A program made the position numbers and the translations under genes. Positions 529-55,998 of a DNA stretch of 63,859 bases are shown here, piece after piece; position 1 is the first letter of the stretch; the number at the start of each line of letters is the position of its first letter. Source of the stretch: Camelus dromedarius (lineage: Eukaryota); contig NC_087472.1 in assembly GCF_036321535.1 (NCBI RefSeq), positions 2,170,001-2,233,859 on the forward strand, given 5' to 3'. The notes under the pieces are model-generated. The model had not been told where the DNA came from, searched no databases, and saw nothing but the letters and a program-made list of their open reading frames with translations.

Positions 529-1210
529 AATAATATTAAATAAGCTTCAGTATCTTAGTTTGTGAATGATATTGATTATACACGTACTGGTACTTAGGCA
601 GCCCAAGACTGAGTTTTGCTATTTTGTAAAACAAATTGGGAAAGTTTCCATCATACTGTGTCATGCCAAAGTAGGTAACACCGCATCGGAATAGAAATTT
701 ACTTGGAAATGTGAGAGTGATCAGCACTAAAATCGGTGGGGTCAAGAAAGAGAGAAGTAAAAGTAAACGATAGGTAATTATTGGCTCCTTATCCCTTTTC
801 TTCTGTCAGTCTATAAAATTATAATTATGTGTGTATAACCTGGATTTGTCTGGCTTAGTTAAGAAAGTAGGAGAAAATCAACCTGGATCAGTAGGATCCC
901 TGCTCACCATCTCAGTTCATCCGCAGACGTTCACCGAGCCTCTCCTCTCTGGAGGGCTCGGTGTTAGCAGTGGGGACACTCGGAAAAGCAGGACAGCCCA
1001 CACCTAGGATAGTCTAGGAGCCGCAGTCACATCGGGAAGTTGGTGAAAGGTCTCCTAAGTCCCATAGGGCAAATAAAAATAGGGCGAGGGGGTGGGGGTC
1101 CGGGAGAGAGCACCCAAGTGTAAGTGCCCAGCGCCAGGGCAGTTCGGGGCTTTGGGAAGCTGGGGGGGAGGTCCTTCTGTGGGAGGTGATGGTAATGAAG
1201 CTGGGTGGTG
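529..1210 (+). other. Detached distal MAGE-A 3' UTR and 3' flank belonging to the upstream gene copy
   Basis: aagcttcagtatcttagtttgtgaatga, aattgggaaa, tacttggaaatgtga, cctggatttgtctggctt, gtctaggagccgcagtcac and gggctttgggaagctg resemble the recalled human MAGEA1 distal 3' UTR and flank, in the same order. Repeats at 7434, 14707, 21979, 29255, 36528, 43620, 50896, 58172. Confidence 0.7.
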
Positions 1211-1700
1211 GCGGCAGGCAGACGTGCAGACGGCGCTTGTTAGTGGTGAGAGGAACGTGTCAGGTGGGAGATTGCTCTGAGAAGTCCCTCTGGGATCGTG
1301 GATACATCTCCTGGGCGAGGGGGGAAGGTGTACTTTGTTCAGGGATGCTTAGAGACCTGGTTATCCTGCCTGAGCTGCTAGGACACTCAGAATGCTCCAA
1401 CTGCAGGGAGGAGTGGCGTTTGACGTGGCTCACAGTGTACTCCGTCCTGGCATATATAGTTGAAGAGGTTTGGTAACCGCCCCAAACTTGGGGTAGGATT
1501 TACTGGGGTGTGTTCTTGGAAACGGTCTGCTGGACACTTACACTGATGGGTCAGCTCCCCTCGATGGTCAGAATCCAAAGCCATAGATGAGGAATGGTCC
1601 TGGACATCGCAGGGAGGAAACACCCACCGAGGCTGAATTCCAAACAGGGAATCCACCTCCGGCCCTCCCGACAGCCCTGGGAGACCCCCGGGCACGGGGT

Positions 1701-1712
1701 CCGGATGTGACG
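1701..1712 (+). promoter_or_regulatory. ETS/half-CRE composite CCGGATGTGACG, MAGE-A-type core promoter element
   Basis: The same 12-mer is recalled from the human MAGEA1 promoter, whose CpG-containing ETS sites are methylation sensitive. Also at 8606, 15879, 23151, 30427, 37700, 44792, 52068, 59344. Confidence 0.65.
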
Positions 1713-2671
1713 GGCGCTGATGCCCCCTCCCTGGGGGGTGAGAGAGGTGAGGGCCTGGGTGAGGGAGGCCGGCTTCAGGTCTGCACAGGGAAGGAGCCCA
1801 GCGCTGCCAGGAGTCAAGGTAGAACCGTGTGGAGGGACTCGGGTTGCAGGGAATCCAGGTCGGTTCTGCTGTCAGCCCTGGGAGACCGCAGGCAGGGTTG
1901 CGGGGATCAGTGCCCCAACCCCCACCCCCGCTTCCCTCTCGGGGGTCCTGGCTGTGGAGGGGCCTGGGTCCAAGGGGAGCAAACTGAGGTGGGCAGAGGG
2001 AGGGGCCCAGGCCCAGCCTGGAGCCCAGGTGAGGAGCAGAGGGAAGGCTGAGGGACCCCCGGGGAATCCATCTCAGCGCCTGGCGTCCACAGTCCTGGGA
2101 AGCCCTGGGCTTGGTGGCCTGCTGTGAGTCCACAGACGCCCCTGGGGGTCTCTGGGCAGTGAGGGCCTTGGTGTGAAGGTGTGGGCTCGGCTCAACAAGG
2201 GGGCGTCCCAGGACCCGCCGGGGCTCAAGGTGAGGACCCTGACGGAGGACAGCATGGGCCCCACAGATCCCCGCCCCTGCTGTCAGCCCTGGGAGGGCCT
2301 GGGTGGGATGAGCACTCGTGGGGCCCTGACTTCCTCACACCCGGGTCTCCGAGGGACGGGGGTCCTGCGATGAGGGGCGGGGCCTCGGGTGGCCAGAGGC
2401 TAGACGACACGACGCCTAAGTGACGACCCTGAGGGAAAACTGAGGGGACCCCGAACCCGGAAAAGAGGCCATCCCACAGAAAGGGGCCCTTGCTATCAGC
2501 TGTCCGGAGGCCCGAGGGCAGGACAGGCCCCCGTGTTGTGTCGTGACTGCGGCACCCTGGTCTCACAGAGACCGGGGACTTCGTGTGAGATGAGGGGGGG
2601 ACCCTCAGATCTGCAGAGGAGAGAATCCCAGGTCCCACTGGGAGTGAAGGTGACGACCGCGAGCGAGCAGT

Positions 2672-3031: not shown

Positions 3032-4033
3032 TCAAGCAGGAAGGAGGGGCCCCTGAACCCAGAAAAGTGGCCATCCCACAGAGAGTCGCCCTTGCTTTCA
3101 GCTGTCCGGCGGCCCGAGGGGACGACAGCCCACGTGGTTTGTCCTGACTTCCGCATCCGAGTCTCAGACAGACCTGGGACATAGTGAAAGGGCGGGGGCC
3201 TCAGGTCTGCGGAGGAGAGAATCTCAGGGCCGCCTGGGAGTGAAGGTGACGACCGCGAGTTAGCATTCAGGGACCCTGGACCCCAAAACAGAGTCAGTCC
3301 TGGGAGGCCATGGGGCGGGAGGACCTCGGGCAGCAGTTCCTGAAATGCGGGTCTCAGAGGGACTGGGGTCTTGGTATGACGGGCGGGGCCTCAGGTGGGC
3401 TGAGAGGGGAATCCCAGGTCCTGCCAGGAGTCAAGGTGACCCCGAGGGAGGAGTGAGGGACCCGAGATCCCAGAACAGAGGGGACGCAACCGATCCTGCC
3501 CCTGCTGTCAGCCCTGGGAGGCCTCAATGCGGGATGAGCACACGTGGTGTGTCCTGACTTCGGCATCCAGGGCTCAGAGAGACCGGGGACCTACTATCAG
3601 GATGGGGCCCTCAGGTGGTTGCAGAGCAGAATCCCAGGTCCCGCTTGGAGTCCCGGTGAGGACCCTGAGTTAGCGCGGACAGGACCTCCCACCCTAGAAG
3701 AGTGGGAACCTGCCAGAGCCCAGGCCTCCTGCCAGCACGCGGGTCCAGGGCTGTGCCACAGTGTAGATCCGAGGTCTCCCCTCCTTTCTCTCCCAGGGGC
3801 TCCAGACACCGGGAAGGCCTAGGTCTGAGACACGTGTTCTCGGGTCACAGAGCACAGGAGGCTGGCAGTGCCAGGACTGAAGGTGAGGTGTGGGCCCTGA
3901 GTGTGTACCCGGGGGCTCCCGGAACAGAGGGGACCCCGCGAGGCCAACGTCCACTCCACACACCCCGTGTTGCCCCCAGAACCTCGGGCTGTGCCGGCTG
4001 CACCCTGAGGAGCCGCCTCACTTCCCCCGTCAG

Positions 4034-4102
4034 GTTCACAGACGACCGTCCACCAGGAGGAGAGCCCCTGTGAGGCCGAGGGCACCCCTGAAGAGGAGAC
4101 CT
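4034..4102 (+). other. Non-coding penultimate exon (69 nt) of the MAGE-A gene
   Basis: Flanked by acceptor cttcccccgtcAG (4032-4033) and donor GTAAGT (4103). Matches the recalled MAGEA layout (...GAAGATCT|gtaagtag). Other copies: 11311-11379, 18584-18652, 25856-25924, 33132-33200, 40220-40288, 47497-47565, 54773-54841, 62050-62118. Confidence 0.85.
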
Positions 4103-4176
4103 GTAAGTAGCCTTTGTCAGAGCCCCCCACGGTGGGTTTCTCAGCCCGGGCCACTGACACTCCCTTTCTTCCCCAG
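4103..4176 (+). other. 74-nt GT-AG intron before the coding exon
   Basis: GTAAGT donor, branch point CACTGAC at 4152-4158, pyrimidine tract tccctttcttcccc, AG at 4175-4176. The exon then starts GCCCGTGGGTC, like recalled human GCCTGTGGGTC. Present in all 9 units. Confidence 0.85.
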
Positions 4177-4254
4177 GCCCGTGGGTCCCCATCTGTCACC
4201 CCTGCCCTCGCTGCTCTCAGCTGCCCGACACCACTCACCGTGCCTCCCGTTCAG

Positions 4255-5259
4255 ATGCGTGACCTCCACCACACTGAAGCCGACTTTCACGACCCAAGAG
4301 AGGCTGAGGATTCCGAGGATGAGCAGGACATTTGGGTTGAGGAGGAGGAGGGCGCATCCCCGTTGTCTCCCTCCTCCTCCTCCTCCTCCTCCTCCTCCTC
4401 CTTCTCCTCCTCGTCTTCCTACTCAGTCCTGTTCCTGGGCAGTGGCGAGGAGGTGGCTGATTCTGGGACACCCAGTCCCGCGCAGAGCCCTCAGGGTGTC
4501 TGCCCCTCCCCCACAGCCGTGGCAGCCCCTCCCTGGAGCCAGTCGGAAGACAATGGCCTCAGAAGCCAAGGTGAGGAGGGGCCCAGCACCGGGCAGGACC
4601 CGGCAGATGCCGAGTCCCGGCTCCACGATGCATTACATTTGATGATGGTTGACCTGATGGGCTTCCTGCTCCACAAGTACCGCACAAAGCAGCCGACCTC
4701 AAAAGAGGAAATGCTGAATGCGGTCCTCAGAGATGACCGGGACCACTTCCCTGCGGTCTTGAGCCAAGCCTCTGAGTGTCTGCAGCTGGTCTTTGGGGTG
4801 GATGTGAAGGAGGTGGACCCCAGGGAGCACTTGTATGTCCTGGTCCCCACCCTGGGCCTCACCTACGATGGCATGCAGGACGATGGGCAGAGCATTCCCA
4901 AGACTGGCCTCCTGCTGATACTTCTGGGTGTGATTGTCCTGGAGGGCGACTTTGCTCCTGAGGAGGCAGTCTGGGGAGCACTTAGCAAGATGGGGCTGTG
5001 TGCTGGGAGGGAGCACTTCATCTATGGGGAGCCCAGGGAGCTCATCACCAACGTGTGGGTGCGGGAGGGGTACGTGGAGTACCGGCAGGTGGCCAACAGC
5101 GATCCCGCTCGCCACGAGTTCCTGTGGGGTCCCCGGGCCTACACGGAGACCAGCAAGCTGCAAGTCCTGGAACATTTCCTCAGGATCAATAGAAGGGGTC
5201 CCAGTTCTTTCCCGTCCCTGTCTGAAGAGCGAGTGAGTGATGAGGAAGAGGGGGCCTGA
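4255..5259 (+). CDS. MAGEA: MAGE-A family protein (MAGE-A10-like), copy 1, 334 aa, single coding exon
   Basis: MAGE homology domain motifs DLMGFLLHKY, FPAVLSQASECLQLVFGVDVKEVDP, LGLTYDGM, PKTGLL, EHFIYGEPRELIT, VEYRQVANSDPARHEFLWGPRA, plus a Ser-rich/acidic N-terminus. First ATG of the coding exon is at 4255. The ORF-track start at 4114 is an intronic TTG. Exact orthologue not assignable. Confidence 0.95.
   Translation: MRDLHHTEADFHDPREAEDSEDEQDIWVEEEEGASPLSPSSSSSSSSSSFSSSSSYSVLFLGSGEEVADSGTPSPAQSPQGVCPSPTAVAAPPWSQSEDNGLRSQGEEGPSTGQDPADAESRLHDALHLMMVDLMGFLLHKYRTKQPTSKEEMLNAVLRDDRDHFPAVLSQASECLQLVFGVDVKEVDPREHLYVLVPTLGLTYDGMQDDGQSIPKTGLLLILLGVIVLEGDFAPEEAVWGALSKMGLCAGREHFIYGEPRELITNVWVREGYVEYRQVANSDPARHEFLWGPRAYTETSKLQVLEHFLRINRRGPSSFPSLSEERVSDEEEGA
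4372..4401 (+). repeat. Coding (TCC)n microsatellite, poly-Ser
   Basis: Ser codon run before TTC is 10, 8, 8, 10, 9, 9, 10, 10, 6 in copies 1-9. Confidence 0.97.
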
Positions 5260-5497
5260 GCCAGACTTGCAGCTGGGCTCCTTCTAGGCCCCTGTCCGGC
5301 AGCTTCTCCTGCCGGGCAGGAAGTGAGGCTGACTCTTCACTGTGTGTCTGAGGAGCAAGGAGTCAGCATCCTAAGTAGTGAGGGCCCGGGCCAGTGGGGG
5401 GGACACGGTGTACAGCATCTCTGGGCTCCTGTTCTCTACAATGATATGGAAGTTCATCTTCATTTCCTTTAGTGATGTTTCAGATGTTATTCGTTTT

Positions 5498-10308: not shown

Positions 10309-11531
10309 TCAAGCAGGAAGGAGGGGCCCCTGAACCCAGAAAAGTGGCCATCCCACAGAGAGTCGCCCTTGCTTTCAGCTGTCCGGCGGCCCGAGGGGAC
10401 GACAGCCCACGTGGTTTGTCCTGACTTCCGCATCCGAGTCTCAGACAGACCTGGGACATAGTGAAAGGGCGGGGGCCTCAGGTCTGCGGAGGAGAGAATC
10501 TCAGGGCCGCCTGGGAGTGAAGGTGACGACCGCGAGTTAGCATTCAGGGACCCTGGACCCCAAAACAGAGTCAGTCCTGGGAGGCCATGGGGCGGGAGGA
10601 CCTCGGGCAGCAGTTCCTGAAATGCGGGTCTCAGAGGGACTGGGGTCTTGGTATGACGGGCGGGGCCTCAGGTGGGCTGAGAGGGGAATCCCAGGTCCTG
10701 CCAGGAGTCAAGGTGACCCCGAGGGAGGAGTGAGGGACCCGAGATCCCAGAACAGAGGGGACGCAACCGATCCTGCCCCTGCTGTCAGCCCTGGGAGGCC
10801 TCAATGCGGGATGAGCACACGTGGTGTGTCCTGACTTCGGCATCCAGGGCTCAGAGAGACCGGGGACCTACTATCAGGATGGGGCCCTCAGGTGGTTGCA
10901 GAGCAGAATCCCAGGTCCCGCTTGGAGTCCCGGTGAGGACCCTGAGTTAGCGCGGACAGGACCTCCCACCCTAGAAGAGTGGGAACCTGCCAGAGCCCAG
11001 GCCTCCTGCCAGCACGCGGGTCCAGGGCTGTGCCACAGTGTAGATCCGAGGTCTCCCCTCCTTTCTCTCCCAGGGGCTCCAGACACCGGGAAGGCCTAGG
11101 TCTGAGACACGTGTTCTCGGGTCACAGAGCACAGGAGGCTGGCAGTGCCAGGACTGAAGGTGAGGTGTGGGCCCTGAGTGTGTACCCGGGGGCTCCCGGA
11201 ACAGAGGGGACCCCGCGAGGCCAACGTCCACTCCACACACCCCGTGTTGCCCCCAGAACCTCGGGCTGTGCCGGCTGCACCCTGAGGAGCCGCCTCACTT
11301 CCCCCGTCAGGTTCACAGACGACCGTCCACCAGGAGGAGAGCCCCTGTGAGGCCGAGGGCACCCCTGAAGAGGAGACCTGTAAGTAGCCTTTGTCAGAGC
11401 CCCCCACGGTGGGTTTCTCAGCCCGGGCCACTGACACTCCCTTTCTTCCCCAGGCCCGTGGGTCCCCATCTGTCACCCCTGCCCTCGCTGCTCTCAGCTG
11501 CCCGACACCACTCACCGTGCCTCCCGTTCAG

Positions 11532-12530
11532 ATGCGTGACCTCCACCACACTGAAGCCGACTTTCACGACCCAAGAGAGGCTGAGGATTCCGAGGATGAG
11601 CAGGACATTTGGGTTGAGGAGGAGGAGGGCGCATCCCCGTTGTCTCCCTCCTCCTCCTCCTCCTCCTCCTCCTTCTCCTCCTCGTCTTCCTACTCAGTCC
11701 TGTTCCTGGGCAGTGGCGAGGAGGTGGCTGATTCTGGGACACCCAGTCCCGCGCAGAGCCCTCAGGGTGTCTGCCCCTCCCCCACAGCCGTGGCAGCCCC
11801 TCCCTGGAGCCAGTCGGAAGACAATGGCCTCAGAAGCCAAGGTGAGGAGGGGCCCAGCACCGGGCAGGACCCGGCAGATGCCGAGTCCCGGCTCCACGAT
11901 GCATTACATTTGATGATGGTTGACCTGATGGGCTTCCTGCTCCACAAGTACCGCACAAAGCAGCCGACCTCAAAAGAGGAAATGCTGAATGCGGTCCTCA
12001 GAGATGACCGGGACCACTTCCCTGCGGTCTTGAGCCAAGCCTCTGAGTGTCTGCAGCTGGTCTTTGGGGTGGATGTGAAGGAGGTGGACCCCAGGGAGCA
12101 CTTGTATGTCCTGGTCCCCACCCTGGGCCTCACCTACGATGGCATGCAGGACGATGGGCAGAGCATTCCCAAGACTGGCCTCCTGCTGATACTTCTGGGT
12201 GTGATTGTCCTGGAGGGCGACTTTGCTCCTGAGGAGGCAGTCTGGGGAGCACTTAGCAAGATGGGGCTGTGTGCTGGGAGGGAGCACTTCATCTATGGGG
12301 AGCCCAGGGAGCTCATCACCAACGTGTGGGTGCGGGAGGGGTACGTGGAGTACCGGCAGGTGGCCAACAGCGATCCCGCTCGCCACGAGTTCCTGTGGGG
12401 TCCCCGGGCCTACACGGAGACCAGCAAGCTGCAAGTCCTGGAACATTTCCTCAGGATCAATAGAAGGGGTCCCAGTTCTTTCCCGTCCCTGTCTGAAGAG
12501 CGAGTGAGTGATGAGGAAGAGGGGGCCTGA
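11532..12530 (+). CDS. MAGEA: MAGE-A family protein, copy 2, 332 aa (8-Ser tract, DDRDH)
   Basis: Same protein as copy 1 except for poly-Ser length; intact frame. Confidence 0.95.
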   Translation: MRDLHHTEADFHDPREAEDSEDEQDIWVEEEEGASPLSPSSSSSSSSFSSSSSYSVLFLGSGEEVADSGTPSPAQSPQGVCPSPTAVAAPPWSQSEDNGLRSQGEEGPSTGQDPADAESRLHDALHLMMVDLMGFLLHKYRTKQPTSKEEMLNAVLRDDRDHFPAVLSQASECLQLVFGVDVKEVDPREHLYVLVPTLGLTYDGMQDDGQSIPKTGLLLILLGVIVLEGDFAPEEAVWGALSKMGLCAGREHFIYGEPRELITNVWVREGYVEYRQVANSDPARHEFLWGPRAYTETSKLQVLEHFLRINRRGPSSFPSLSEERVSDEEEGA

Positions 12531-17581: not shown

Positions 17582-18804
17582 TCAAGCAGGAAGGAGGGGC
17601 CCCTGAACCCAGAAAAGTGGCCATCCCACAGAGAGTCGCCCTTGCTTTCAGCTGTCCGGCGGCCCGAGGGGACGACAGCCCACGTGGTTTGTCCTGACTT
17701 CCGCATCCGAGTCTCAGACAGACCTGGGACATAGTGAAAGGGCGGGGGCCTCAGGTCTGCGGAGGAGAGAATCTCAGGGCCGCCTGGGAGTGAAGGTGAC
17801 GACCGCGAGTTAGCATTCAGGGACCCTGGACCCCAAAACAGAGTCAGTCCTGGGAGGCCATGGGGCGGGAGGACCTCGGGCAGCAGTTCCTGAAATGCGG
17901 GTCTCAGAGGGACTGGGGTCTTGGTATGACGGGCGGGGCCTCAGGTGGGCTGAGAGGGGAATCCCAGGTCCTGCCAGGAGTCAAGGTGACCCCGAGGGAG
18001 GAGTGAGGGACCCGAGATCCCAGAACAGAGGGGACGCAACCGATCCTGCCCCTGCTGTCAGCCCTGGGAGGCCTCAATGCGGGATGAGCACACGTGGTGT
18101 GTCCTGACTTCGGCATCCAGGGCTCAGAGAGACCGGGGACCTACTATCAGGATGGGGCCCTCAGGTGGTTGCAGAGCAGAATCCCAGGTCCCGCTTGGAG
18201 TCCCGGTGAGGACCCTGAGTTAGCGCGGACAGGACCTCCCACCCTAGAAGAGTGGGAACCTGCCAGAGCCCAGGCCTCCTGCCAGCACGCGGGTCCAGGG
18301 CTGTGCCACAGTGTAGATCCGAGGTCTCCCCTCCTTTCTCTCCCAGGGGCTCCAGACACCGGGAAGGCCTAGGTCTGAGACACGTGTTCTCGGGTCACAG
18401 AGCACAGGAGGCTGGCAGTGCCAGGACTGAAGGTGAGGTGTGGGCCCTGAGTGTGTACCCGGGGGCTCCCAGAACAGAGGGGACCCCGCGAGGCCAACGT
18501 CCACTCCACACACCCCGTGTTGCCCCCAGAACCTCGGGCTGTGCCGGCTGCACCCTGAGGAGCCGCCTCACTTCCCCCGTCAGGTTCACAGACGACCGTC
18601 CACCAGGAGGAGAGCCCCTGTGAGGCCGAGGGCACCCCTGAAGAGGAGACCTGTAAGTAGCCTTTGTCAGAGCCCCCCACGGTGGGTTTCTCAGCCCGGG
18701 CCACTGACACTCCCTTTCTTCCCCAGGCCCGTGGGTCCCCATCTGTCACCCCTGCCCTCGCTGCTCTCAGCTGCCCGACACCACTCACCGTGCCTCCCGT
18801 TCAG

Positions 18805-19803
18805 ATGCGTGACCTCCACCACACTGAAGCCGACTTTCACGACCCAAGAGAGGCTGAGGATTCCGAGGATGAGCAGGACATTTGGGTTGAGGAGGAGGAG
18901 GGCGCATCCCCGTTGTCTCCCTCCTCCTCCTCCTCCTCCTCCTCCTTCTCCTCCTCGTCTTCCTACTCAGTCCTGTTCCTGGGCAGTGGCGAGGAGGTGG
19001 CTGATTCTGGGACACCCAGTCCCGCGCAGAGCCCTCAGGGTGTCTGCCCCTCCCCCACAGCCGTGGCAGCCCCTCCCTGGAGCCAGTCGGAAGACAATGG
19101 CCTCAGAAGCCAAGGTGAGGAGGGGCCCAGCACCGGGCAGGACCCGGCAGATGCCGAGTCCCGGCTCCACGATGCATTACATTTGATGATGGTTGACCTG
19201 ATGGGCTTCCTGCTCCACAAGTACCGCACAAAGCAGCCGACCTCAAAAGAGGAAATGCTGAATGCGGTCCTCAGAGATGACCGGGACCACTTCCCTGCGG
19301 TCTTGAGCCAAGCCTCTGAGTGTCTGCAGCTGGTCTTTGGGGTGGATGTGAAGGAGGTGGACCCCAGGGAGCACTTGTATGTCCTGGTCCCCACCCTGGG
19401 CCTCACCTACGATGGCATGCAGGACGATGGGCAGAGCATTCCCAAGACTGGCCTCCTGCTGATACTTCTGGGTGTGATTGTCCTGGAGGGCGACTTTGCT
19501 CCTGAGGAGGCAGTCTGGGGAGCACTTAGCAAGATGGGGCTGTGTGCTGGGAGGGAGCACTTCATCTATGGGGAGCCCAGGGAGCTCATCACCAACGTGT
19601 GGGTGCGGGAGGGGTACGTGGAGTACCGGCAGGTGGCCAACAGCGATCCCGCTCGCCACGAGTTCCTGTGGGGTCCCCGGGCCTACACGGAGACCAGCAA
19701 GCTGCAAGTCCTGGAACATTTCCTCAGGATCAATAGAAGGGGTCCCAGTTCTTTCCCGTCCCTGTCTGAAGAGCGAGTGAGTGATGAGGAAGAGGGGGCC
19801 TGA
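18805..19803 (+). CDS. MAGEA: MAGE-A family protein, copy 3, 332 aa (8-Ser tract, DDRDH)
   Basis: Same translation as copy 2; intact frame. Confidence 0.95.
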   Translation: MRDLHHTEADFHDPREAEDSEDEQDIWVEEEEGASPLSPSSSSSSSSFSSSSSYSVLFLGSGEEVADSGTPSPAQSPQGVCPSPTAVAAPPWSQSEDNGLRSQGEEGPSTGQDPADAESRLHDALHLMMVDLMGFLLHKYRTKQPTSKEEMLNAVLRDDRDHFPAVLSQASECLQLVFGVDVKEVDPREHLYVLVPTLGLTYDGMQDDGQSIPKTGLLLILLGVIVLEGDFAPEEAVWGALSKMGLCAGREHFIYGEPRELITNVWVREGYVEYRQVANSDPARHEFLWGPRAYTETSKLQVLEHFLRINRRGPSSFPSLSEERVSDEEEGA

Positions 19804-24853: not shown

Positions 24854-26076
24854 TCAAGCAGGAAGGAGGGGCCCCTGAACCCAGAAAAGTGGCCATCCCA
24901 CAGAGAGTCGCCCTTGCTTTCAGCTGTCCGGCGGCCCGAGGGGACGACAGCCCACGTGGTTTGTCCTGACTTCCGCATCCGAGTCTCAGACAGACCTGGG
25001 ACATAGTGAAAGGGCGGGGGCCTCAGGTCTGCGGAGGAGAGAATCTCAGGGCCGCCTGGGAGTGAAGGTGACGACCGCGAGTTAGCATTCAGGGACCCTG
25101 GACCCCAAAACAGAGTCAGTCCTGGGAGGCCATGGGGCGGGAGGACCTCGGGCAGCAGTTCCTGAAATGCGGGTCTCAGAGGGACTGGGGTCTTGGTATG
25201 ACGGGCGGGGCCTCAGGTGGGCTGAGAGGGGAATCCCAGGTCCTGCCAGGAGTCAAGGTGACCCCGAGGGAGGAGTGAGGGACCCGAGATCCCAGAACAG
25301 AGGGGACGCAACCGATCCTGCCCCTGCTGTCAGCCCTGGGAGGCCTCAATGCGGGATGAGCACACGTGGTGTGTCCTGACTTCGGCATCCAGGGCTCAGA
25401 GAGACCGGGGACCTACTATCAGGATGGGGCCCTCAGGTGGTTGCAGAGCAGAATCCCAGGTCCCGCTTGGAGTCCCGGTGAGGACCCTGAGTTAGCGCGG
25501 ACAGGACCTCCCACCCTAGAAGAGTGGGAACCTGCCAGAGCCCAGGCCTCCTGCCAGCACGCGGGTCCAGGGCTGTGCCACAGTGTAGATCCGAGGTCTC
25601 CCCTCCTTTCTCTCCCAGGGGCTCCAGACACCGGGAAGGCCTAGGTCTGAGACACGTGTTCTCGGGTCACAGAGCACAGGAGGCTGGCAGTGCCAGGACT
25701 GAAGGTGAGGTGTGGGCCCTGAGTGTGTACCCGGGGGCTCCCGGAACAGAGGGGACCCCGCGAGGCCAACGTCCACTCCACACACCCCGTGTTGCCCCCA
25801 GAACCTCGGGCTGTGCCGGCTGCACCCTGAGGAGCCGCCTCACTTCCCCCGTCAGGTTCACAGACGACCGTCCACCAGGAGGAGAGCCCCTGTGAGGCCG
25901 AGGGCACCCCTGAAGAGGAGACCTGTAAGTAGCCTTTGTCAGAGCCCCCCACGGTGGGTTTCTCAGCCCGGGCCACTGACACTCCCTTTCTTCCCCAGGC
26001 CCGTGGGTCCCCATCTGTCACCCCTGCCCTCGCTGCTCTCAGCTGCCCGACACCACTCACCGTGCCTCCCGTTCAG

Positions 26077-27081
26077 ATGCGTGACCTCCACCACACTGAA
26101 GCCGACTTTCACGACCCAAGAGAGGCTGAGGATTCCGAGGATGAGCAGGACATTTGGGTTGAGGAGGAGGAGGGCGCATCCCCGTTGTCTCCCTCCTCCT
26201 CCTCCTCCTCCTCCTCCTCCTCCTTCTCCTCCTCGTCTTCCTACTCAGTCCTGTTCCTGGGCAGTGGCGAGGAGGTGGCTGATTCTGGGACACCCAGTCC
26301 CGCGCAGAGCCCTCAGGGTGTCTGCCCCTCCCCCACAGCCGTGGCAGCCCCTCCCTGGAGCCAGTCGGAAGACAATGGCCTCAGAAGCCAAGGTGAGGAG
26401 GGGCCCAGCACCGGGCAGGACCCGGCAGATGCCGAGTCCCGGCTCCACGATGCATTACATTTGATGATGGTTGACCTGATGGGCTTCCTGCTCCACAAGT
26501 ACCGCACAAAGCAGCCGACCTCAAAAGAGGAAATGCTGAATGCGGTCCTCAGAGATGACCAGGACCACTTCCCTGCGGTCTTGAGCCAAGCCTCTGAGTG
26601 TCTGCAGCTGGTCTTTGGGGTGGATGTGAAGGAGGTGGACCCCAGGGAGCACTTGTATGTCCTGGTCCCCACCCTGGGCCTCACCTACGATGGCATGCAG
26701 GACGATGGGCAGAGCATTCCCAAGACTGGCCTCCTGCTGATACTTCTGGGTGTGATTGTCCTGGAGGGCGACTTTGCTCCTGAGGAGGCAGTCTGGGGAG
26801 CACTTAGCAAGATGGGGCTGTGTGCTGGGAGGGAGCACTTCATCTATGGGGAGCCCAGGGAGCTCATCACCAACGTGTGGGTGCGGGAGGGGTACGTGGA
26901 GTACCGGCAGGTGGCCAACAGCGATCCCGCTCGCCACGAGTTCCTGTGGGGTCCCCGGGCCTACACGGAGACCAGCAAGCTGCAAGTCCTGGAACATTTC
27001 CTCAGGATCAATAGAAGGGGTCCCAGTTCTTTCCCGTCCCTGTCTGAAGAGCGAGTGAGTGATGAGGAAGAGGGGGCCTGA
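26077..27081 (+). CDS. MAGEA: MAGE-A family protein, copy 4, 334 aa (10-Ser tract, DDQDH)
   Basis: Intact frame; R>Q variant relative to copies 1-3. Confidence 0.95.
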   Translation: MRDLHHTEADFHDPREAEDSEDEQDIWVEEEEGASPLSPSSSSSSSSSSFSSSSSYSVLFLGSGEEVADSGTPSPAQSPQGVCPSPTAVAAPPWSQSEDNGLRSQGEEGPSTGQDPADAESRLHDALHLMMVDLMGFLLHKYRTKQPTSKEEMLNAVLRDDQDHFPAVLSQASECLQLVFGVDVKEVDPREHLYVLVPTLGLTYDGMQDDGQSIPKTGLLLILLGVIVLEGDFAPEEAVWGALSKMGLCAGREHFIYGEPRELITNVWVREGYVEYRQVANSDPARHEFLWGPRAYTETSKLQVLEHFLRINRRGPSSFPSLSEERVSDEEEGA

Positions 27082-32129: not shown

Positions 32130-33352
32130 TCAAGCAGGAAGGAGGGGCCCCTGAACCCAGAAAAGTGGCCATCCCACAGAGAGTCGCCCTTGCTTTCAGC
32201 TGTCCGGCGGCCCGAGGGGACGACAGCCCACGTGGTTTGTCCTGACTTCCGCATCCGAGTCTCAGACAGACCTGGGACATAGTGAAAGGGCGGGGGCCTC
32301 AGGTCTGCGGAGGAGAGAATCTCAGGGCCGCCTGGGAGTGAAGGTGACGACCGCGAGTTAGCATTCAGGGACCCTGGACCCCAAAACAGAGTCAGTCCTG
32401 GGAGGCCATGGGGCGGGAGGACCTCGGGCAGCAGTTCCTGAAATGCGGGTCTCAGAGGGACTGGGGTCTTGGTATGACGGGCGGGGCCTCAGGTGGGCTG
32501 AGAGGGGAATCCCAGGTCCTGCCAGGAGTCAAGGTGACCCCGAGGGAGGAGTGAGGGACCCGAGATCCCAGAACAGAGGGGACGCAACCGATCCTGCCCC
32601 TGCTGTCAGCCCTGGGAGGCCTCAATGCGGGATGAGCACACGTGGTGTGTCCTGACTTCGGCATCCAGGGCTCAGAGAGACCGGGGACCTACTATCAGGA
32701 TGGGGCCCTCAGGTGGTTGCAGAGCAGAATCCCAGGTCCCGCTTGGAGTCCCGGTGAGGACCCTGAGTTAGCGCGGACAGGACCTCCCACCCTAGAAGAG
32801 TGGGAACCTGCCAGAGCCCAGGCCTCCTGCCAGCACGCGGGTCCAGGGCTGTGCCACAGTGTAGATCCGAGGTCTCCCCTCCTTTCTCTCCCAGGGGCTC
32901 CAGACACCGGGAAGGCCTAGGTCTGAGACACGTGTTCTCGGGTCACAGAGCACAGGAGGCTGGCAGTGCCAGGACTGAAGGTGAGGTGTGGGCCCTGAGT
33001 GTGTACCCGGGGGCTCCCGGAACAGAGGGGACCCCGCGAGGCCAACGTCCACTCCACACACCCCGTGTTGCCCCCAGAACCTCGGGCTGTGCCGGCTGCA
33101 CCCTGAGGAGCCGCCTCACTTCCCCCGTCAGGTTCACAGACGACCGTCCACCTGGAGGAGAGCCCCTGTGAGGCCGAGGGCACCCCTGAAGAGGAGACCT
33201 GTAAGTAGCCTTTGTCAGAGCCCCCCACGGTGGGTTTCTCAGCCCGGGCCACTGACACTCCCTTTCTTCCCCAGGCCCGTGGGTCCCCATCTGTCACCCC
33301 TGCCCTCGCTGCTCTCAGCTGCCCGACACCACTCACCGTGCCTCCCGTTCAG

Positions 33353-34354
33353 ATGCGTGACCTCCACCACACTGAAGCCGACTTTCACGACCCAAGAGAG
33401 GCTGAGGATTCCGAGGATGAGCAGGACATTTGGGTTGAGGAGGAGGAGGGCGCATCCCCGTTGTCTCCCTCCTCCTCCTCCTCTTCCTCCTCCTCCTTCT
33501 CCTCCTCGTCTTCCTACTCAGTCCTGTTCCTGGGCAGTGGCGAGGAGGTGGCTGATTCTGGGACACCCAGTCCCGCGCAGAGCCCTCAGGGTGTCTGCCC
33601 CTCCCCCACAGCCGTGGCAGCCCCTCCCTGGAGCCAGTCGGAAGACAATGGCCTCAGAAGCCAAGGTGAGGAGGGGCCCAGCACCGGGCAGGACCCGGCA
33701 GATGCCGAGTCCCGGCTCCACGATGCATTACATTTGATGATGGTTGACCTGATGGGCTTCCTGCTCCACAAGTACCGCACAAAGCAGCCGACCTCAAAAG
33801 AGGAAATGCTGAATGCGGTCCTCAGAGATGACCAGGACCACTTCCCTGCGGTCTTGAGCCAAGCCTCTGAGTGTCTGCAGCTGGTCTTTGGGGTGGATGT
33901 GAAGGAGGTGGACCCCAGGGAGCACTTGTATGTCCTGGTCCCCACCCTGGGCCTCACCTACGATGGCATGCAGGACGATGGGCAGAGCATTCCCAAGACT
34001 GGCCTCCTGCTGATACTTCTGGGTGTGATTGTCCTGGAGGGCGACTTTGCTCCTGAGGAGGCAGTCTGGGGAGCACTTAGCAAGATGGGGCTGTGTGCTG
34101 GGAGGGAGCACTTCATCTATGGGGAGCCCAGGGAGCTCATCACCAACGTGTGGGTGCGGGAGGGGTACGTGGAGTACCGGCAGGTGGCCAACAGCGATCC
34201 CGCTCGCCACGAGTTCCTGTGGGGTCCCCGGGCCTACACGGAGACCAGCAAGCTGCAAGTCCTGGAACATTTCCTCAGGATCAATAGAAGGGGTCCCAGT
34301 TCTTTCCCGTCCCTGTCTGAAGAGCGAGTGAGTGATGAGGAAGAGGGGGCCTGA
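33353..34354 (+). CDS. MAGEA: MAGE-A family protein, copy 5, 333 aa (9-Ser tract with TCT interruption, DDQDH)
   Basis: Intact frame. Confidence 0.95.
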   Translation: MRDLHHTEADFHDPREAEDSEDEQDIWVEEEEGASPLSPSSSSSSSSSFSSSSSYSVLFLGSGEEVADSGTPSPAQSPQGVCPSPTAVAAPPWSQSEDNGLRSQGEEGPSTGQDPADAESRLHDALHLMMVDLMGFLLHKYRTKQPTSKEEMLNAVLRDDQDHFPAVLSQASECLQLVFGVDVKEVDPREHLYVLVPTLGLTYDGMQDDGQSIPKTGLLLILLGVIVLEGDFAPEEAVWGALSKMGLCAGREHFIYGEPRELITNVWVREGYVEYRQVANSDPARHEFLWGPRAYTETSKLQVLEHFLRINRRGPSSFPSLSEERVSDEEEGA

Positions 34355-39216: not shown

Positions 39217-40440
39217 TCAAGCAGGAAGGAGGGGCCCCTGAACCCAGAAAAGTGGCCATCCCACAGAGAGTCGCCCTTGCTTTCAGCTGTCCGGCGGCCC
39301 GAGGGGACGACAGGCCCACGTGGTTTGTCCTGACTTCCGCATTCGAGTCTCAGACAGACTGGAGACTTAGTGAAAGGGAGGGGGCCTCAGGTCTGCGGAG
39401 GAGAGAATCTCAGGGCCGCCTGGGAGTGAAGGTGACAACCGCGAGTTTGCATTCAGGGACCCTGGACCCCAGAACAGAGTCAGTCCTGGAAGGCCATGGG
39501 GCGGGAGGACCTCGGGCAGCAGTTCCTGAAATGCGGGTCTCAGAGGGACTGGGGTCTTGGTATGACGGGCGGGGCCTCAGGTGGGCTGAGAGGGGAATCC
39601 CAGGTCCTGCCAGGAGTCAAGGTGACCCCGAGGGAGGAGTGAGGGACCCGAGATCCCAGAACAGAGGGGACGCAACCGATCCTGCCCCTGCTGTCAGCCC
39701 TGGGAGGCCTCAATGCGGGATGAGCACACGTGGTGTGTCCTGACTTCGGCATCCAGGGCTCAGAGAGACCGGGGACCTACTATCAGGATGGGGCCCTCAG
39801 GTGGTTGCAGAGCAGAATCCCAGGTCCCGCTTGGAGTCCCGGTGAGGACCCTGAGTTAGCACGGACAGGACCTCCCACCCTAGAAGAGTGGGAACCTGCC
39901 AGAGCCCAGGCCTCCTGCCAGCACGCGGGTCCAGGGCTGTGCCACAGTGTAGATCCGAGGTCTCCCCTCCTTTCTCTCCCAGGGGCTCCAGACACCGGGA
40001 AGGCCTAGGTCTGAGACACGTGTTCTCGGGTCACAGAGCACAGGAGGCTGGCAGTGCCAGGACTGAAGGTGAGGTGTGGGCCCTGAGTGTGTACCCGGGG
40101 GCTCCCGGAACAGAGGGGACCCCGCGAGGCCAACGTCCACTCAACACACCCCGTGTTGCCCCCAGAACCTCGGGCTGTGCCGGCTGCACCCTGAGGAGCC
40201 GCCTCACTTCCCCCGTCAGGTTCACAGACGACCGTCCACCTGGAGGAGAGCCCCTGTGAGGCCGAGGGCACCCCTGAAGAGGAGACCTGTAAGTAGCCTT
40301 TGTCAGAGCCCCCCACGGTGGGTTTCTCAGCCCGGGCCACTGACACTCCCTTTCTTCCCCAGGCCCGTGGGTCCCCATCTGTCACCCCTGCCCTCGCTGC
40401 TCTCAGCTGCCCGACACCACTCACCGTGCCTCCCGTTCAG

Positions 40441-41442
40441 ATGCGTGACCTCCACCACACTGAAGCCGACTTTCACGACCCAAGAGAGGCTGAGGATTCC
40501 GAGGATGAGCAGGACATTTGGGTTGAGGAGGAGGAGGGCGCATCCCCGTTGTCTCCCTCCTCCTCCTCCTCTTCCTCCTCCTCCTTCTCCTCCTCGTCTT
40601 CCTACTCAGTCCTGTTCCTGGGCAGTGGCGAGGAGGTGGCTGATTCTGGGACACCCAGTCCCGCGCAGAGCCCTCAGGGTGTCTGCCCCTCCCCCACAGC
40701 CGTGGCAGCCCCTCCCTGGAGCCAGTCGGAAGACAATGGCCTCAGAAGCCAAGGTGAGGAGGGGCCCAGCACCGGGCAGGACCCGGCAGATGCCGAGTCC
40801 CGGCTCCACGATGCATTACATTTGATGATGGTTGACCTGATGGGCTTCCTGCTCCACAAGTACCGCACAAAGCAGCCGACCTCAAAAGAGGAAATGCTGA
40901 ATGCGGTCCTCAGAGATGACCAGGACCACTTCCCTGCGGTCTTGAGCCAAGCCTCTGAGTGTCTGCAGCTGGTCTTTGGGGTGGATGTGAAGGAGGTGGA
41001 CCCCAGGGAGCACTTGTATGTCCTGGTCCCCACCCTGGGCCTCACCTACGATGGCATGCAGGACGATGGGCAGAGCATTCCCAAGACTGGCCTCCTGCTG
41101 ATACTTCTGGGTGTGATTGTCCTGGAGGGCGACTTTGCTCCTGAGGAGGCAGTCTGGGGAGCACTTAGCAAGATGGGGCTGTGTGCTGGGAGGGAGCACT
41201 TCATCTATGGGGAGCCCAGGGAGCTCATCACCAACGTGTGGGTGCGGGAGGGGTACGTGGAGTACCGGCAGGTGGCCAACAGCGATCCCGCTCGCCACGA
41301 GTTCCTGTGGGGTCCCCGGGCCTACACGGAGACCAGCAAGCTGCAAGTCCTGGAACATTTCCTCAGGATCAATAGAAGGGGTCCCAGTTCTTTCCCGTCC
41401 CTGTCTGAAGAGCGAGTGAGTGATGAGGAAGAGGGGGCCTGA
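40441..41442 (+). CDS. MAGEA: MAGE-A family protein, copy 6, 333 aa (9-Ser tract with TCT interruption, DDQDH)
   Basis: Intact frame. Confidence 0.95.
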   Translation: MRDLHHTEADFHDPREAEDSEDEQDIWVEEEEGASPLSPSSSSSSSSSFSSSSSYSVLFLGSGEEVADSGTPSPAQSPQGVCPSPTAVAAPPWSQSEDNGLRSQGEEGPSTGQDPADAESRLHDALHLMMVDLMGFLLHKYRTKQPTSKEEMLNAVLRDDQDHFPAVLSQASECLQLVFGVDVKEVDPREHLYVLVPTLGLTYDGMQDDGQSIPKTGLLLILLGVIVLEGDFAPEEAVWGALSKMGLCAGREHFIYGEPRELITNVWVREGYVEYRQVANSDPARHEFLWGPRAYTETSKLQVLEHFLRINRRGPSSFPSLSEERVSDEEEGA

Positions 41443-46494: not shown

Positions 46495-47717
46495 TCAAGC
46501 AGGAAGGAGGGGCCCCTGAACCCAGAAAAGTGGCCATCCCACAGAGAGTCGCCCTTGCTTTCAGCTGTCCGGCGGCCCGAGGGGACGACAGCCCACGTGG
46601 TTTGTCCTGACTTCCGCATCCGAGTCTCAGACAGACCTGGGACATAGTGAAAGGGCGGGGGCCTCAGGTCTGCGGAGGAGAGAATCTCAGGGCCGCCTGG
46701 GAGTGAAGGTGACGACCGCGAGTTAGCATTCAGGGACCCTGGACCCCAAAACAGAGTCAGTCCTGGGAGGCCATGGGGCGGGAGGACCTCGGGCAGCAGT
46801 TCCTGAAATGCGGGTCTCAGAGGGACTGGGGTCTTGGTATGACGGGCGGGGCCTCAGGTGGGCTGAGAGGGGAATCCCAGGTCCTGCCAGGAGTCAAGGT
46901 GACCCCGAGGGAGGAGTGAGGGACCCGAGATCCCAGAACAGAGGGGACGCAACCGATCCTGCCCCTGCTGTCAGCCCTGGGAGGCCTCAATGCGGGATGA
47001 GCACACGTGGTGTGTCCTGACTTCGGCATCCAGGGCTCAGAGAGACCGGGGACCTACTATCAGGATGGGGCCCTCAGGTGGTTGCAGAGCAGAATCCCAG
47101 GTCCCGCTTGGAGTCCCGGTGAGGACCCTGAGTTAGCGCGGACAGGACCTCCCACCCTAGAAGAGTGGGAACCTGCCAGAGCCCAGGCCTCCTGCCAGCA
47201 CGCGGGTCCAGGGCTGTGCCACAGTGTAGATCCGAGGTCTCCCCTCCTTTCTCTCCCAGGGGCTCCAGACACCGGGAAGGCCTAGGTCTGAGACACGTGT
47301 TCTCGGGTCACAGAGCACAGGAGGCTGGCAGTGCCAGGACTGAAGGTGAGGTGTGGGCCCTGAGTGTGTACCCGGGGGCTCCCGGAACAGAGGGGACCCC
47401 GCGAGGCCAACGTCCACTCCACACACCCCGTGTTGCCCCCAGAACCTCGGGCTGTGCCGGCTGCACCCTGAGGAGCCGCCTCACTTCCCCCGTCAGGTTC
47501 ACAGACGACCGTCCACCAGGAGGAGAGCCCCTGTGAGGCCGAGGGCACCCCTGAAGAGGAGACCTGTAAGTAGCCTTTGTCAGAGCCCCCCACGGTGGGT
47601 TTCTCAGCCCGGGCCACTGACACTCCCTTTCTTCCCCAGGCCCGTGGGTCCCCATCTGTCACCCCTGCCCTCGCTGCTCTCAGCTGCCCGACACCACTCA
47701 CCGTGCCTCCCGTTCAG

Positions 47718-48722
47718 ATGCGTGACCTCCACCACACTGAAGCCGACTTTCACGACCCAAGAGAGGCTGAGGATTCCGAGGATGAGCAGGACATTTGGGT
47801 TGAGGAGGAGGAGGGCGCATCCCCGTTGTCTCCCTCCTCCTCCTCCTCCTCCTCCTCCTCCTCCTTCTCCTCCTCGTCTTCCTACTCAGTCCTGTTCCTG
47901 GGCAGTGGCGAGGAGGTGGCTGATTCTGGGACACCCAGTCCCGCGCAGAGCCCTCAGGGTGTCTGCCCCTCCCCCACAGCCGTGGCAGCCCCTCCCTGGA
48001 GCCAGTCGGAAGACAATGGCCTCAGAAGCCAAGGTGAGGAGGGGCCCAGCACCGGGCAGGACCCGGCAGATGCCGAGTCCCGGCTCCACGATGCATTACA
48101 TTTGATGATGGTTGACCTGATGGGCTTCCTGCTCCACAAGTACCGCACAAAGCAGCCGACCTCAAAAGAGGAAATGCTGAATGCGGTCCTCAGAGATGAC
48201 CAGGACCACTTCCCTGCGGTCTTGAGCCAAGCCTCTGAGTGTCTGCAGCTGGTCTTTGGGGTGGATGTGAAGGAGGTGGACCCCAGGGAGCACTTGTATG
48301 TCCTGGTCCCCACCCTGGGCCTCACCTACGATGGCATGCAGGACGATGGGCAGAGCATTCCCAAGACTGGCCTCCTGCTGATACTTCTGGGTGTGATTGT
48401 CCTGGAGGGCGACTTTGCTCCTGAGGAGGCAGTCTGGGGAGCACTTAGCAAGATGGGGCTGTGTGCTGGGAGGGAGCACTTCATCTATGGGGAGCCCAGG
48501 GAGCTCATCACCAACGTGTGGGTGCGGGAGGGGTACGTGGAGTACCGGCAGGTGGCCAACAGCGATCCCGCTCGCCACGAGTTCCTGTGGGGTCCCCGGG
48601 CCTACACGGAGACCAGCAAGCTGCAAGTCCTGGAACATTTCCTCAGGATCAATAGAAGGGGTCCCAGTTCTTTCCCGTCCCTGTCTGAAGAGCGAGTGAG
48701 TGATGAGGAAGAGGGGGCCTGA
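47718..48722 (+). CDS. MAGEA: MAGE-A family protein, copy 7, 334 aa (10-Ser tract, DDQDH)
   Basis: Intact frame. Confidence 0.95.
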   Translation: MRDLHHTEADFHDPREAEDSEDEQDIWVEEEEGASPLSPSSSSSSSSSSFSSSSSYSVLFLGSGEEVADSGTPSPAQSPQGVCPSPTAVAAPPWSQSEDNGLRSQGEEGPSTGQDPADAESRLHDALHLMMVDLMGFLLHKYRTKQPTSKEEMLNAVLRDDQDHFPAVLSQASECLQLVFGVDVKEVDPREHLYVLVPTLGLTYDGMQDDGQSIPKTGLLLILLGVIVLEGDFAPEEAVWGALSKMGLCAGREHFIYGEPRELITNVWVREGYVEYRQVANSDPARHEFLWGPRAYTETSKLQVLEHFLRINRRGPSSFPSLSEERVSDEEEGA

Positions 48723-53770: not shown

Positions 53771-54993
53771 TCAAGCAGGAAGGAGGGGCCCCTGAACCCA
53801 GAAAAGTGGCCATCCCACAGAGAGTCGCCCTTGCTTTCAGCTGTCCGGCGGCCCGAGGGGACGACAGCCCACGTGGTTTGTCCTGACTTCCGCATCCGAG
53901 TCTCAGACAGACCTGGGACATAGTGAAAGGGCGGGGGCCTCAGGTCTGCGGAGGAGAGAATCTCAGGGCCGCCTGGGAGTGAAGGTGACGACCGCGAGTT
54001 AGCATTCAGGGACCCTGGACCCCAAAACAGAGTCAGTCCTGGGAGGCCATGGGGCGGGAGGACCTCGGGCAGCAGTTCCTGAAATGCGGGTCTCAGAGGG
54101 ACTGGGGTCTTGGTATGACGGGCGGGGCCTCAGGTGGGCTGAGAGGGGAATCCCAGGTCCTGCCAGGAGTCAAGGTGACCCCGAGGGAGGAGTGAGGGAC
54201 CCGAGATCCCAGAACAGAGGGGACGCAACCGATCCTGCCCCTGCTGTCAGCCCTGGGAGGCCTCAATGCGGGATGAGCACACGTGGTGTGTCCTGACTTC
54301 GGCATCCAGGGCTCAGAGAGACCGGGGACCTACTATCAGGATGGGGCCCTCAGGTGGTTGCAGAGCAGAATCCCAGGTCCCGCTTGGAGTCCCGGTGAGG
54401 ACCCTGAGTTAGCGCGGACAGGACCTCCCACCCTAGAAGAGTGGGAACCTGCCAGAGCCCAGGCCTCCTGCCAGCACGCGGGTCCAGGGCTGTGCCACAG
54501 TGTAGATCCGAGGTCTCCCCTCCTTTCTCTCCCAGGGGCTCCAGACACCGGGAAGGCCTAGGTCTGAGACACGTGTTCTCGGGTCACAGAGCACAGGAGG
54601 CTGGCAGTGCCAGGACTGAAGGTGAGGTGTGGGCCCTGAGTGTGTACCCGGGGGCTCCCGGAACAGAGGGGACCCCGCGAGGCCAACGTCCACTCCACAC
54701 ACCCCGTGTTGCCCCCAGAACCTCGGGCTGTGCCGGCTGCACCCTGAGGAGCCGCCTCACTTCCCCCGTCAGGTTCACAGACGACCGTCCACCAGGAGGA
54801 GAGCCCCTGTGAGGCCGAGGGCACCCCTGAAGAGGAGACCTGTAAGTAGCCTTTGTCAGAGCCCCCCACGGTGGGTTTCTCAGCCCGGGCCACTGACACT
54901 CCCTTTCTTCCCCAGGCCCGTGGGTCCCCATCTGTCACCCCTGCCCTCGCTGCTCTCAGCTGCCCGACACCACTCACCGTGCCTCCCGTTCAG

Positions 54994-55998
54994 ATGCGTG
55001 ACCTCCACCACACTGAAGCCGACTTTCACGACCCAAGAGAGGCTGAGGATTCCGAGGATGAGCAGGACATTTGGGTTGAGGAGGAGGAGGGCGCATCCCC
55101 GTTGTCTCCCTCCTCCTCCTCCTCCTCCTCCTCCTCCTCCTTCTCCTCCTCGTCTTCCTACTCAGTCCTGTTCCTGGGCAGTGGCGAGGAGGTGGCTGAT
55201 TCTGGGACACCCAGTCCCGCGCAGAGCCCTCAGGGTGTCTGCCCCTCCCCCACAGCCGTGGCAGCCCCTCCCTGGAGCCAGTCGGAAGACAATGGCCTCA
55301 GAAGCCAAGGTGAGGAGGGGCCCAGCACCGGGCAGGACCCGGCAGATGCCGAGTCCCGGCTCCACGATGCATTACATTTGATGATGGTTGACCTGATGGG
55401 CTTCCTGCTCCACAAGTACCGCACAAAGCAGCCGACCTCAAAAGAGGAAATGCTGAATGCGGTCCTCAGAGATGACCAGGACCACTTCCCTGCGGTCTTG
55501 AGCCAAGCCTCTGAGTGTCTGCAGCTGGTCTTTGGGGTGGATGTGAAGGAGGTGGACCCCAGGGAGCACTTGTATGTCCTGGTCCCCACCCTGGGCCTCA
55601 CCTACGATGGCATGCAGGACGATGGGCAGAGCATTCCCAAGACTGGCCTCCTGCTGATACTTCTGGGTGTGATTGTCCTGGAGGGCGACTTTGCTCCTGA
55701 GGAGGCAGTCTGGGGAGCACTTAGCAAGATGGGGCTGTGTGCTGGGAGGGAGCACTTCATCTATGGGGAGCCCAGGGAGCTCATCACCAACGTGTGGGTG
55801 CGGGAGGGGTACGTGGAGTACCGGCAGGTGGCCAACAGCGATCCCGCTCGCCACGAGTTCCTGTGGGGTCCCCGGGCCTACACGGAGACCAGCAAGCTGC
55901 AAGTCCTGGAACATTTCCTCAGGATCAATAGAAGGGGTCCCAGTTCTTTCCCGTCCCTGTCTGAAGAGCGAGTGAGTGATGAGGAAGAGGGGGCCTGA
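54994..55998 (+). CDS. MAGEA: MAGE-A family protein, copy 8, 334 aa (10-Ser tract, DDQDH)
   Basis: Intact frame. Confidence 0.95.
   Translation: MRDLHHTEADFHDPREAEDSEDEQDIWVEEEEGASPLSPSSSSSSSSSSFSSSSSYSVLFLGSGEEVADSGTPSPAQSPQGVCPSPTAVAAPPWSQSEDNGLRSQGEEGPSTGQDPADAESRLHDALHLMMVDLMGFLLHKYRTKQPTSKEEMLNAVLRDDQDHFPAVLSQASECLQLVFGVDVKEVDPREHLYVLVPTLGLTYDGMQDDGQSIPKTGLLLILLGVIVLEGDFAPEEAVWGALSKMGLCAGREHFIYGEPRELITNVWVREGYVEYRQVANSDPARHEFLWGPRAYTETSKLQVLEHFLRINRRGPSSFPSLSEERVSDEEEGA

Follow-up and report, generated by a model that had tools for sequence, protein, structure and literature searches.

The window, by which we mean the whole 63,859-nt stretch of camel DNA analysed here, carries nine copies of a MAGE-A8-like gene, all on the forward strand. 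The 29-mer CACTCACC GTG CCT CCC GTT CAG ATG CGT occurs at nine exact sites on this strand with no mismatches (starting at 4232, 11509, 18782, 26054, 33330, 40418, 47695, 54971 and 62248), against a chance expectation of 0 in 100 shuffles. An earlier note on this DNA had placed a GTG followed by an ATG in every copy, and the nine exact occurrences bear this out. Successive copies are spaced 7272–7277 bp apart, with a single exception of 7088 bp. Read from the GTG, the frame stays open for 335–339 codons in all nine copies, and the resulting ORFs vary solely in the length of a poly-Ser run and at one R/Q site. The features of copy 1, followed by the remaining copies, are listed below.

3797–3882, + strand: leader exon 1b of copy 1, as inferred from alpaca model P0005; contains the in-frame stops TAG 3820 and TGA 3826 and no ATG
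4034–4102, + strand: leader exon 2 of copy 1, 69 nt, bounded by AG and GT; no ATG, MAGE frame open
4177–4239, + strand: 5' part of the last exon of copy 1, upstream of the GTG; acceptor AG at 4175–4176, open in frame, no ATG
4240–4242, + strand: GTG at the ancestral MAGE-A initiator position of copy 1; context ACC GTG C
4255–4257, + strand: ATG at codon 6 of copy 1; weak context CAG ATG C; an ATG in every relative read
4255–5259, + strand: MAGE-A8-like coding sequence of copy 1, 334 codons plus TGA, wholly inside the last exon
11517–12530, + strand: copy 2, GTG 11517, ATG 11532, ORF to stop
18790–19803, + strand: copy 3, GTG 18790, ATG 18805, ORF to stop
26062–27081, + strand: copy 4, GTG 26062, ATG 26077, ORF to stop
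33338–34354, + strand: copy 5, GTG 33338, ATG 33353, ORF to stop
40426–41442, + strand: copy 6, GTG 40426, ATG 40441, ORF to stop
47703–48722, + strand: copy 7, GTG 47703, ATG 47718, ORF to stop
54979–55998, + strand: copy 8, GTG 54979, ATG 54994, ORF to stop
62256–63263, + strand: copy 9, GTG 62256, ATG 62271, ORF to stop

The predicted product contains the MAGE homology domain (Pfam PF01454, residues 137–300; 56.6 bits against a cut-off of 25) and the MAGE_N domain (Pfam PF12440; 52.6–60 bits against a curated cut-off of 26.6). Its top protein match is Camelus bactrianus P0001, ‘melanoma-associated antigen 8-like’, at 99% identity over 100% of the query, and the next is Vicugna pacos P0002 of the same name, at 88% identity. 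All of the best matches are to MAGE-A8/9/10-like genes, and one alpaca chromosome record contains several of the loci. The layout typical of type I MAGE-A genes is also present, with short leader exons (the leader being inferred from alpaca P0005) and an uninterrupted coding sequence in the last exon. By domain content, homology and copy structure, the window is a camel tandem array of an intact MAGE-A8-like gene.

To place the GTG at 4240, the DNA of relatives was retrieved via their annotated proteins and the homologous codons were read. Codons 1 to 7 are as follows.

Camel array (window): GTG CCT CCC GTT CAG ATG CGT
Alpaca array gene: the same as the camel array
Alpaca paralogue P0009: ATG CCT GTG GTT CAG ATG GGT
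C. bactrianus P0048 gene: ATG TCC CTG GTT CAG ATG AGT
Rhino: ATG CCT CTA GGT CAG ATG AGT
Horse: ATG ACT CTA GGT CGG ATG GGT
Mesoplodon (beaked whale): ATG CCC CTG GTC GAG ATG AGT

The leader just 5' of codon 1 also aligns between the camel array gene and these relatives, and position 1 of the Pfam MAGE_N model matches residue 5 of the rhino protein, numbered from Met1, as well as residue 5 of the window gene's translation, numbered from the GTG. In a maximum-likelihood tree built on positions −60 to +690, the GTG genes form one clade (support 99/99) nested among camelid paralogues that have the ATG, and whales, perissodactyls and a bat branch outside; in the 5' half with the trait codon itself removed, the support for this clade is 100/100. 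Because the GTG clade is nested among ATG genes, GTG is derived and goes back to one mutation. The alignment, the domain register and the tree show codon 4240 to be the homologue of the canonical MAGE-A initiator ATG. The proposal that an old ATG had become GTG at 4240 is therefore upheld by five ATG-bearing relatives read codon for codon, by the MAGE_N register and by the polarity of the tree. The sequence contexts given in the earlier note were also correct: A occupies −3 of the GTG (whose +4 is C), and C occupies both −3 and +4 of the ATG at 4255.

That note had compared the gene with human MAGE-A10. The motif TCATCATGCCT, claimed for the human gene, occurs literally in the rhino gene. For MAGE-A10, non-human orthologues were used in place of the human sequence; they begin MPRAPKRRRYMLEE or MPHVPKRRRY, match gap-free with M1 on the window's V1, and carry K at position 6, as that note had it.

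The codon-6 ATG (Met6) has a different history from the one first proposed. It is an ATG in every relative read as DNA, whatever the state of codon 1. N-termini of the form M-x-x-x-x-M are common among the best 120 homologues, where they include MPVVQM, MPGVQM, MSLVQM and MPLVQM in camelids, MPLGQM in rhino, MTLGRM in horse, MPLVEM in whale and MPGHHM, MPRHQM, MPFNQM and MPLRQM in bats; in the same set, position 6 is Q in pig, R, S or K in carnivores and K in the A10 group. The view that the ATG at 4255 is a new replacement does not survive this comparison, since a codon-6 ATG coexists with the canonical ATG (ATG1) in camelid paralogues, rhino, horse, whales and many bats. Met6 is thus older than the loss of ATG1, and it had looked like a fresh gain because MAGE-A10 was the only comparator. 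Across these homologues, Met6 is an old, widely shared second methionine of the MAGE-A8-like subfamily and not a new start. Of the start-codon turnover proposed earlier, one half stands, namely that the initiator was lost and that GTG is derived; the other half falls, as the replacing ATG predates the loss.

The alpaca genome helps to date these events. Comparison with two alpaca stretches (L015:1-21029 and L016:1-21029) revealed an array of four consecutive genes at 7308–7312 bp spacing, with the same 29-mer in all four copies read. Its left edge lies at L015:7194, adjoining a Cor1-domain gene, and an interior alpaca junction is collinear with camel across the L015:7194 point over 1614 bp at 93.9% identity (window 857–2445). 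As this internal junction is common to both species, the tandem duplication predates the camel/alpaca split, and the presence of GTG in both arrays makes this codon, on the sequences compared, at least as old as the split. Over the 5' 3.2 kb, alpaca copies are 99.7–99.9% identical to one another and camel copies 97.9–100%, against ~95% between the species. Such likeness within species is, as a pattern of identities, the signature of concerted evolution or repeated re-expansion, and points to an old array kept homogeneous within each lineage. With an array common to both species and homogenised copies, the order of mutation and amplification is unreadable. Fixation of GTG before amplification, as the earlier note had it, and spread of GTG by homogenisation are inseparable on these data. 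For its further suggestion that array expansion compensates for weak initiation, no support for such dosage compensation was found; alpaca P0009, which retains ATG1, is multi-copy too.

Where translation would begin depends on the leader, whose spliced exon structure was taken from NCBI gene models. According to alpaca P0005, introns of 151 and 74 nt separate the three parts of the leader, namely exon 1b, exon 2 and the last exon, and the 74-nt intron before the last exon of the camel gene agrees with this model. The translation of exon 2, VHRRPSTRRRAPVRPRAPLKRRP, occurs in the Gnomon models P0005 and P0084. All nine camel copies have GT-AG leader exon boundaries, equivalents of TAG 3820 and TGA 3826 in frame, and a spliced leader that contains no ATG. 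On this model, the exon 1b-2-3 leader would offer AUG 4255 as its first AUG. With no other leader AUG and two in-frame stops upstream, initiation would most likely take place at AUG 4255. The next AUG, at 4319, has A at −3 but is out of frame and opens a 107-codon ORF.

Several further features of the 5' region were observed. The start ATG of P0005 in exon 1b corresponds to AGG in camel, two codons before the equivalent of a CTG at 3862–3864; this CTG is in frame, downstream of the stops, and has A at −3 and G at +4, the optimal surroundings for a near-cognate start. Initiation there would lengthen the protein by ~60 Arg/Pro-rich residues. By their position and context, CTG 3862 and GTG 4240 are candidate near-cognate starts. 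In alpaca P0005 itself, the frame from the exon 1b ATG runs on through the GTG and adds an N-terminal extension of 58 residues, rich in Arg and Pro. Models P0007 and P0089 use a candidate alternative first exon at 3311–3395, which has three ATGs, at 3311 (GCC ATG G), 3345 and 3377, with a GT donor immediately 3' of it, at 3396. Spliced to exon 2, the ATGs at 3311 and 3377 are in a different frame, which ends at TGA 4260–4262 and overlaps the MAGE start; if present in the mRNA, the ATGs of this exon would give a long overlapping upstream ORF. The array gene has also received three incompatible annotations in P0003, P0004 and P0007 (C. ferus, C. dromedarius and C. bactrianus, respectively), which start at an upstream ATG out of the MAGE frame, use internal acceptors or fuse adjacent copies, and which include chimeric models beginning in exons further 5', probably because the canonical ATG is missing.

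Taken together, we consider it likely that a single ATG-to-GTG change occurred before the camel and alpaca lineages split and that Met6 took over as the start of the camelid array gene. One A-to-G change in the camelid lineage would have converted the canonical ATG to GTG, and Met6, already in frame five codons downstream, would have kept the gene translatable. Scanning ribosomes would then reach AUG 4255 first and most likely initiate there, yielding a product shorter by five residues at a disordered, poorly conserved N-terminus. Such a shift would probably be near-neutral. Some observations count against this reading: the weak Kozak context of AUG 4255 and the out-of-frame AUG at 4319 mean that output could be poor, and the ATGs of the alternative first exon at ~3311–3395 (P0007, P0089) also weigh on this side. 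The base at +4 of the second ATG, G or A in relatives, became C on the GTG lineage; this base having weakened, nothing indicates that the remaining start became stronger once ATG1 had gone.

Other readings place the start elsewhere or deny the gene a product. GUG 4240 might still initiate, decoded by Met-tRNAi, to give two proteoforms or mainly the full-length one. The codon keeps the old strong upstream context (ACC, with A at −3) while the AUG downstream is weakly placed, and PMC3105428 offers a precedent in the non-AUG N-terminal extensions it documents in mammals. The GTG and the next four codons are also the same in camel and alpaca, but this 15-nt identity cannot count in favour: the adjoining leader differs at just 2 of 75 nt, and five codons give the comparison no power. 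As a rule GUG initiates weakly, the C at +4 is poor for near-cognate starts, and the humpback and Pteropus genes have lost the same ATG in other ways (to AGG and ACG), which suggests that the codon is dispensable rather than preserved. Retained initiation at GUG thus appears unlikely. A true start at an upstream AUG in an alternative 5' exon, with GTG as an internal Val codon, is highly improbable. Gnomon models alpaca P0005 and C. ferus P0084 in this way, the alpaca gene having an in-frame ATG in exon 1b; extended models of a similar kind exist for humpback and Pteropus, and in the camel gene the 44 codons of exon 2 and of the last exon 5' of the GTG are free of stops. A stop-free run of 44 codons, however, has p ~0.4 in such GC-rich sequence by a base-composition estimate. 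The exon 1b ATG position is AGG in all nine camel copies with TAG 3820 and TGA 3826 just upstream, no ATG lies within 3900–4239, and the ATGs at 3311 and 3377 join exon 2 in another frame.

It might also be that loss of the start marks a decaying gene, the array yielding hardly any MAGE protein or none. Comparing the array genes of camel and alpaca (window 4255–4996 against alpaca L006, first 239 aligned codons), we counted 5 synonymous and 18 non-synonymous differences, a dN/dS of ~1.1, against ~0.6 in comparisons with paralogues; the value is compatible with relaxed constraint. The weak context of the surviving AUG, the well-placed out-of-frame AUG that follows it and the mutually inconsistent camel annotations of the locus would fit such decay as well. 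Yet 5:18 is not significantly different from the ratio seen with paralogues (a rough binomial estimate on small counts, ~0.17), and the ORFs are intact in all 13 copies seen (9 camel, 4 alpaca), with length differences in multiples of three, at a camel–alpaca divergence of ~3% in the coding part (and ~5% in the compared 5' region). In addition, eight RNA-labelled runs, including four reproductive-system libraries, contain 61–75% of the sampled words of 3280–5300. We therefore regard decay as quite unlikely, and takeover by Met6 remains the preferred reading. The alpaca array gene also carries a long in-frame Glu/Asp expansion after residue 30.

The loss of ATG1 is not confined to camelids. In the humpback whale gene codon 1 is AGG (L011:1171-1173) and in that of the flying fox Pteropus vampyrus it is ACG (L012:738-740), with the ATG at codon 6 kept in both. 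In these two genes the MAGE ORF is otherwise modelled, and the NCBI models use upstream in-frame starts. On the tree, ATG1 has been lost independently in three lineages, namely camelids, humpback and Pteropus vampyrus. A parallel loss in toothed whales was considered and rejected, as the Mesoplodon gene is annotated from Met6 yet its DNA has an intact in-frame ATG1. Both Mesoplodon (L009:1486-1503) and C. bactrianus P0048 (L013:1486-1503) are annotated from the second ATG while their ATG1 is intact, with a purine at −3, and so annotation from Met6 is no evidence that ATG1 has been lost. In Mesoplodon, P0048 and the camel array gene, an AG after a pyrimidine-rich run precedes the second ATG (in camel, cctcccgttcag directly before the ATG), and it is conceivable from this arrangement that an alternative splice acceptor lies just before the second ATG in these genes.

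The ATG-less 5' module has also moved between paralogues. Alpaca P0005 (L004:3001-4389) carries GTG, but its 5' part falls within the array clade and its 3' part with P0009, and a single clade in the 3' part is disfavoured (AU p = 0.04). As the two parts group differently, the 5' module was acquired by recombination. P0005 had been considered as proof that GTG far predates the camel/alpaca split; being a chimera, it was set aside for that purpose. C. ferus P0084, which has VPPVEM on a P0048-like body, is probably a similar chimera, as judged from its protein sequence only. A broader proposal would treat the MAGE-A8-like genes of Laurasiatheria as two-start genes (Met1 and Met6) whose first start is expendable or disfavoured, such that the repeated losses and the spread of the module reflect selection on start choice or proteoform ratio, not drift, and a minor GUG form may persist in camels. 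We offer this tentatively and think it rather unlikely to hold.

The main value of these results lies in annotation and in the correct reading of MAGE-A evolution. With Met6 as an old back-up start, the camel array gene can be modelled simply and consistently, and several other Laurasiatherian MAGE-A genes annotated from Met6 (for example in sheep, reindeer, right whale, Kogia and bats) may be explained in the same way, with the caveat that ATG1 is intact in both of those read as DNA (P0048 and Mesoplodon). The functional effect is probably small, at five residues of a variable N-terminus. The loss of ATG1 in three lineages and the copying of the 5' module onto paralogues are of modest interest for start-codon evolution. 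In itself, a start-site shift by five residues is ordinary and of a known kind, and the gene is already annotated.

Our searches for literature on MAGE-A start codons or camel MAGE-A found nothing specific, and comparison is best made with related genes and with general studies. The camelid MAGE-A8-like entries P0001 and P0002 share the MAGE_N and MAGE domains with the window gene, show no substantive difference from it and are the same gene; their annotation already begins at the 4255-equivalent ATG and is silent on the fallback after loss of the canonical ATG. The alpaca gene lies in the ~7.3 kb array of that species. The camelid paralogues that retain both ATGs (alpaca P0009, MPVVQM; C. bactrianus P0010, MPGVQM; and the P0048 gene, MSLVQM) have in common with the array gene the exon layout, a homologous leader and the codon-6 ATG, at 71–73% protein identity. 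They differ in having an ATG1 with a purine at −3 where the array gene has GTG, and in carrying G or A at +4 of the second ATG where the array gene has C. MAGE-A10 is more distant: its orthologues (alpaca P0042, dolphin P0065, warthog P0074) align gap-free at the N-terminus, but they belong to a separate MAGE-A subfamily with ~60% identity over 74–78% of the query, and are not the nearest comparator.

Beyond this family, in-frame AUGs that are conserved downstream and act as alternative starts have been described as a general property of eukaryotic genes (PMC3025576, PMC7397870). Bazykin and Kochetov (2011; PMC3025576) and Benitez-Cantos et al. (2020; PMC7397870) describe start-capable in-frame AUGs within the first ~30 codons that are conserved across species, and Met6 is of this sort. 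The difference lies in the first AUG, which in those studies is present but weak, whereas in MAGE-A8-like genes it is well placed in relatives and then disappeared altogether, independently in three lineages.
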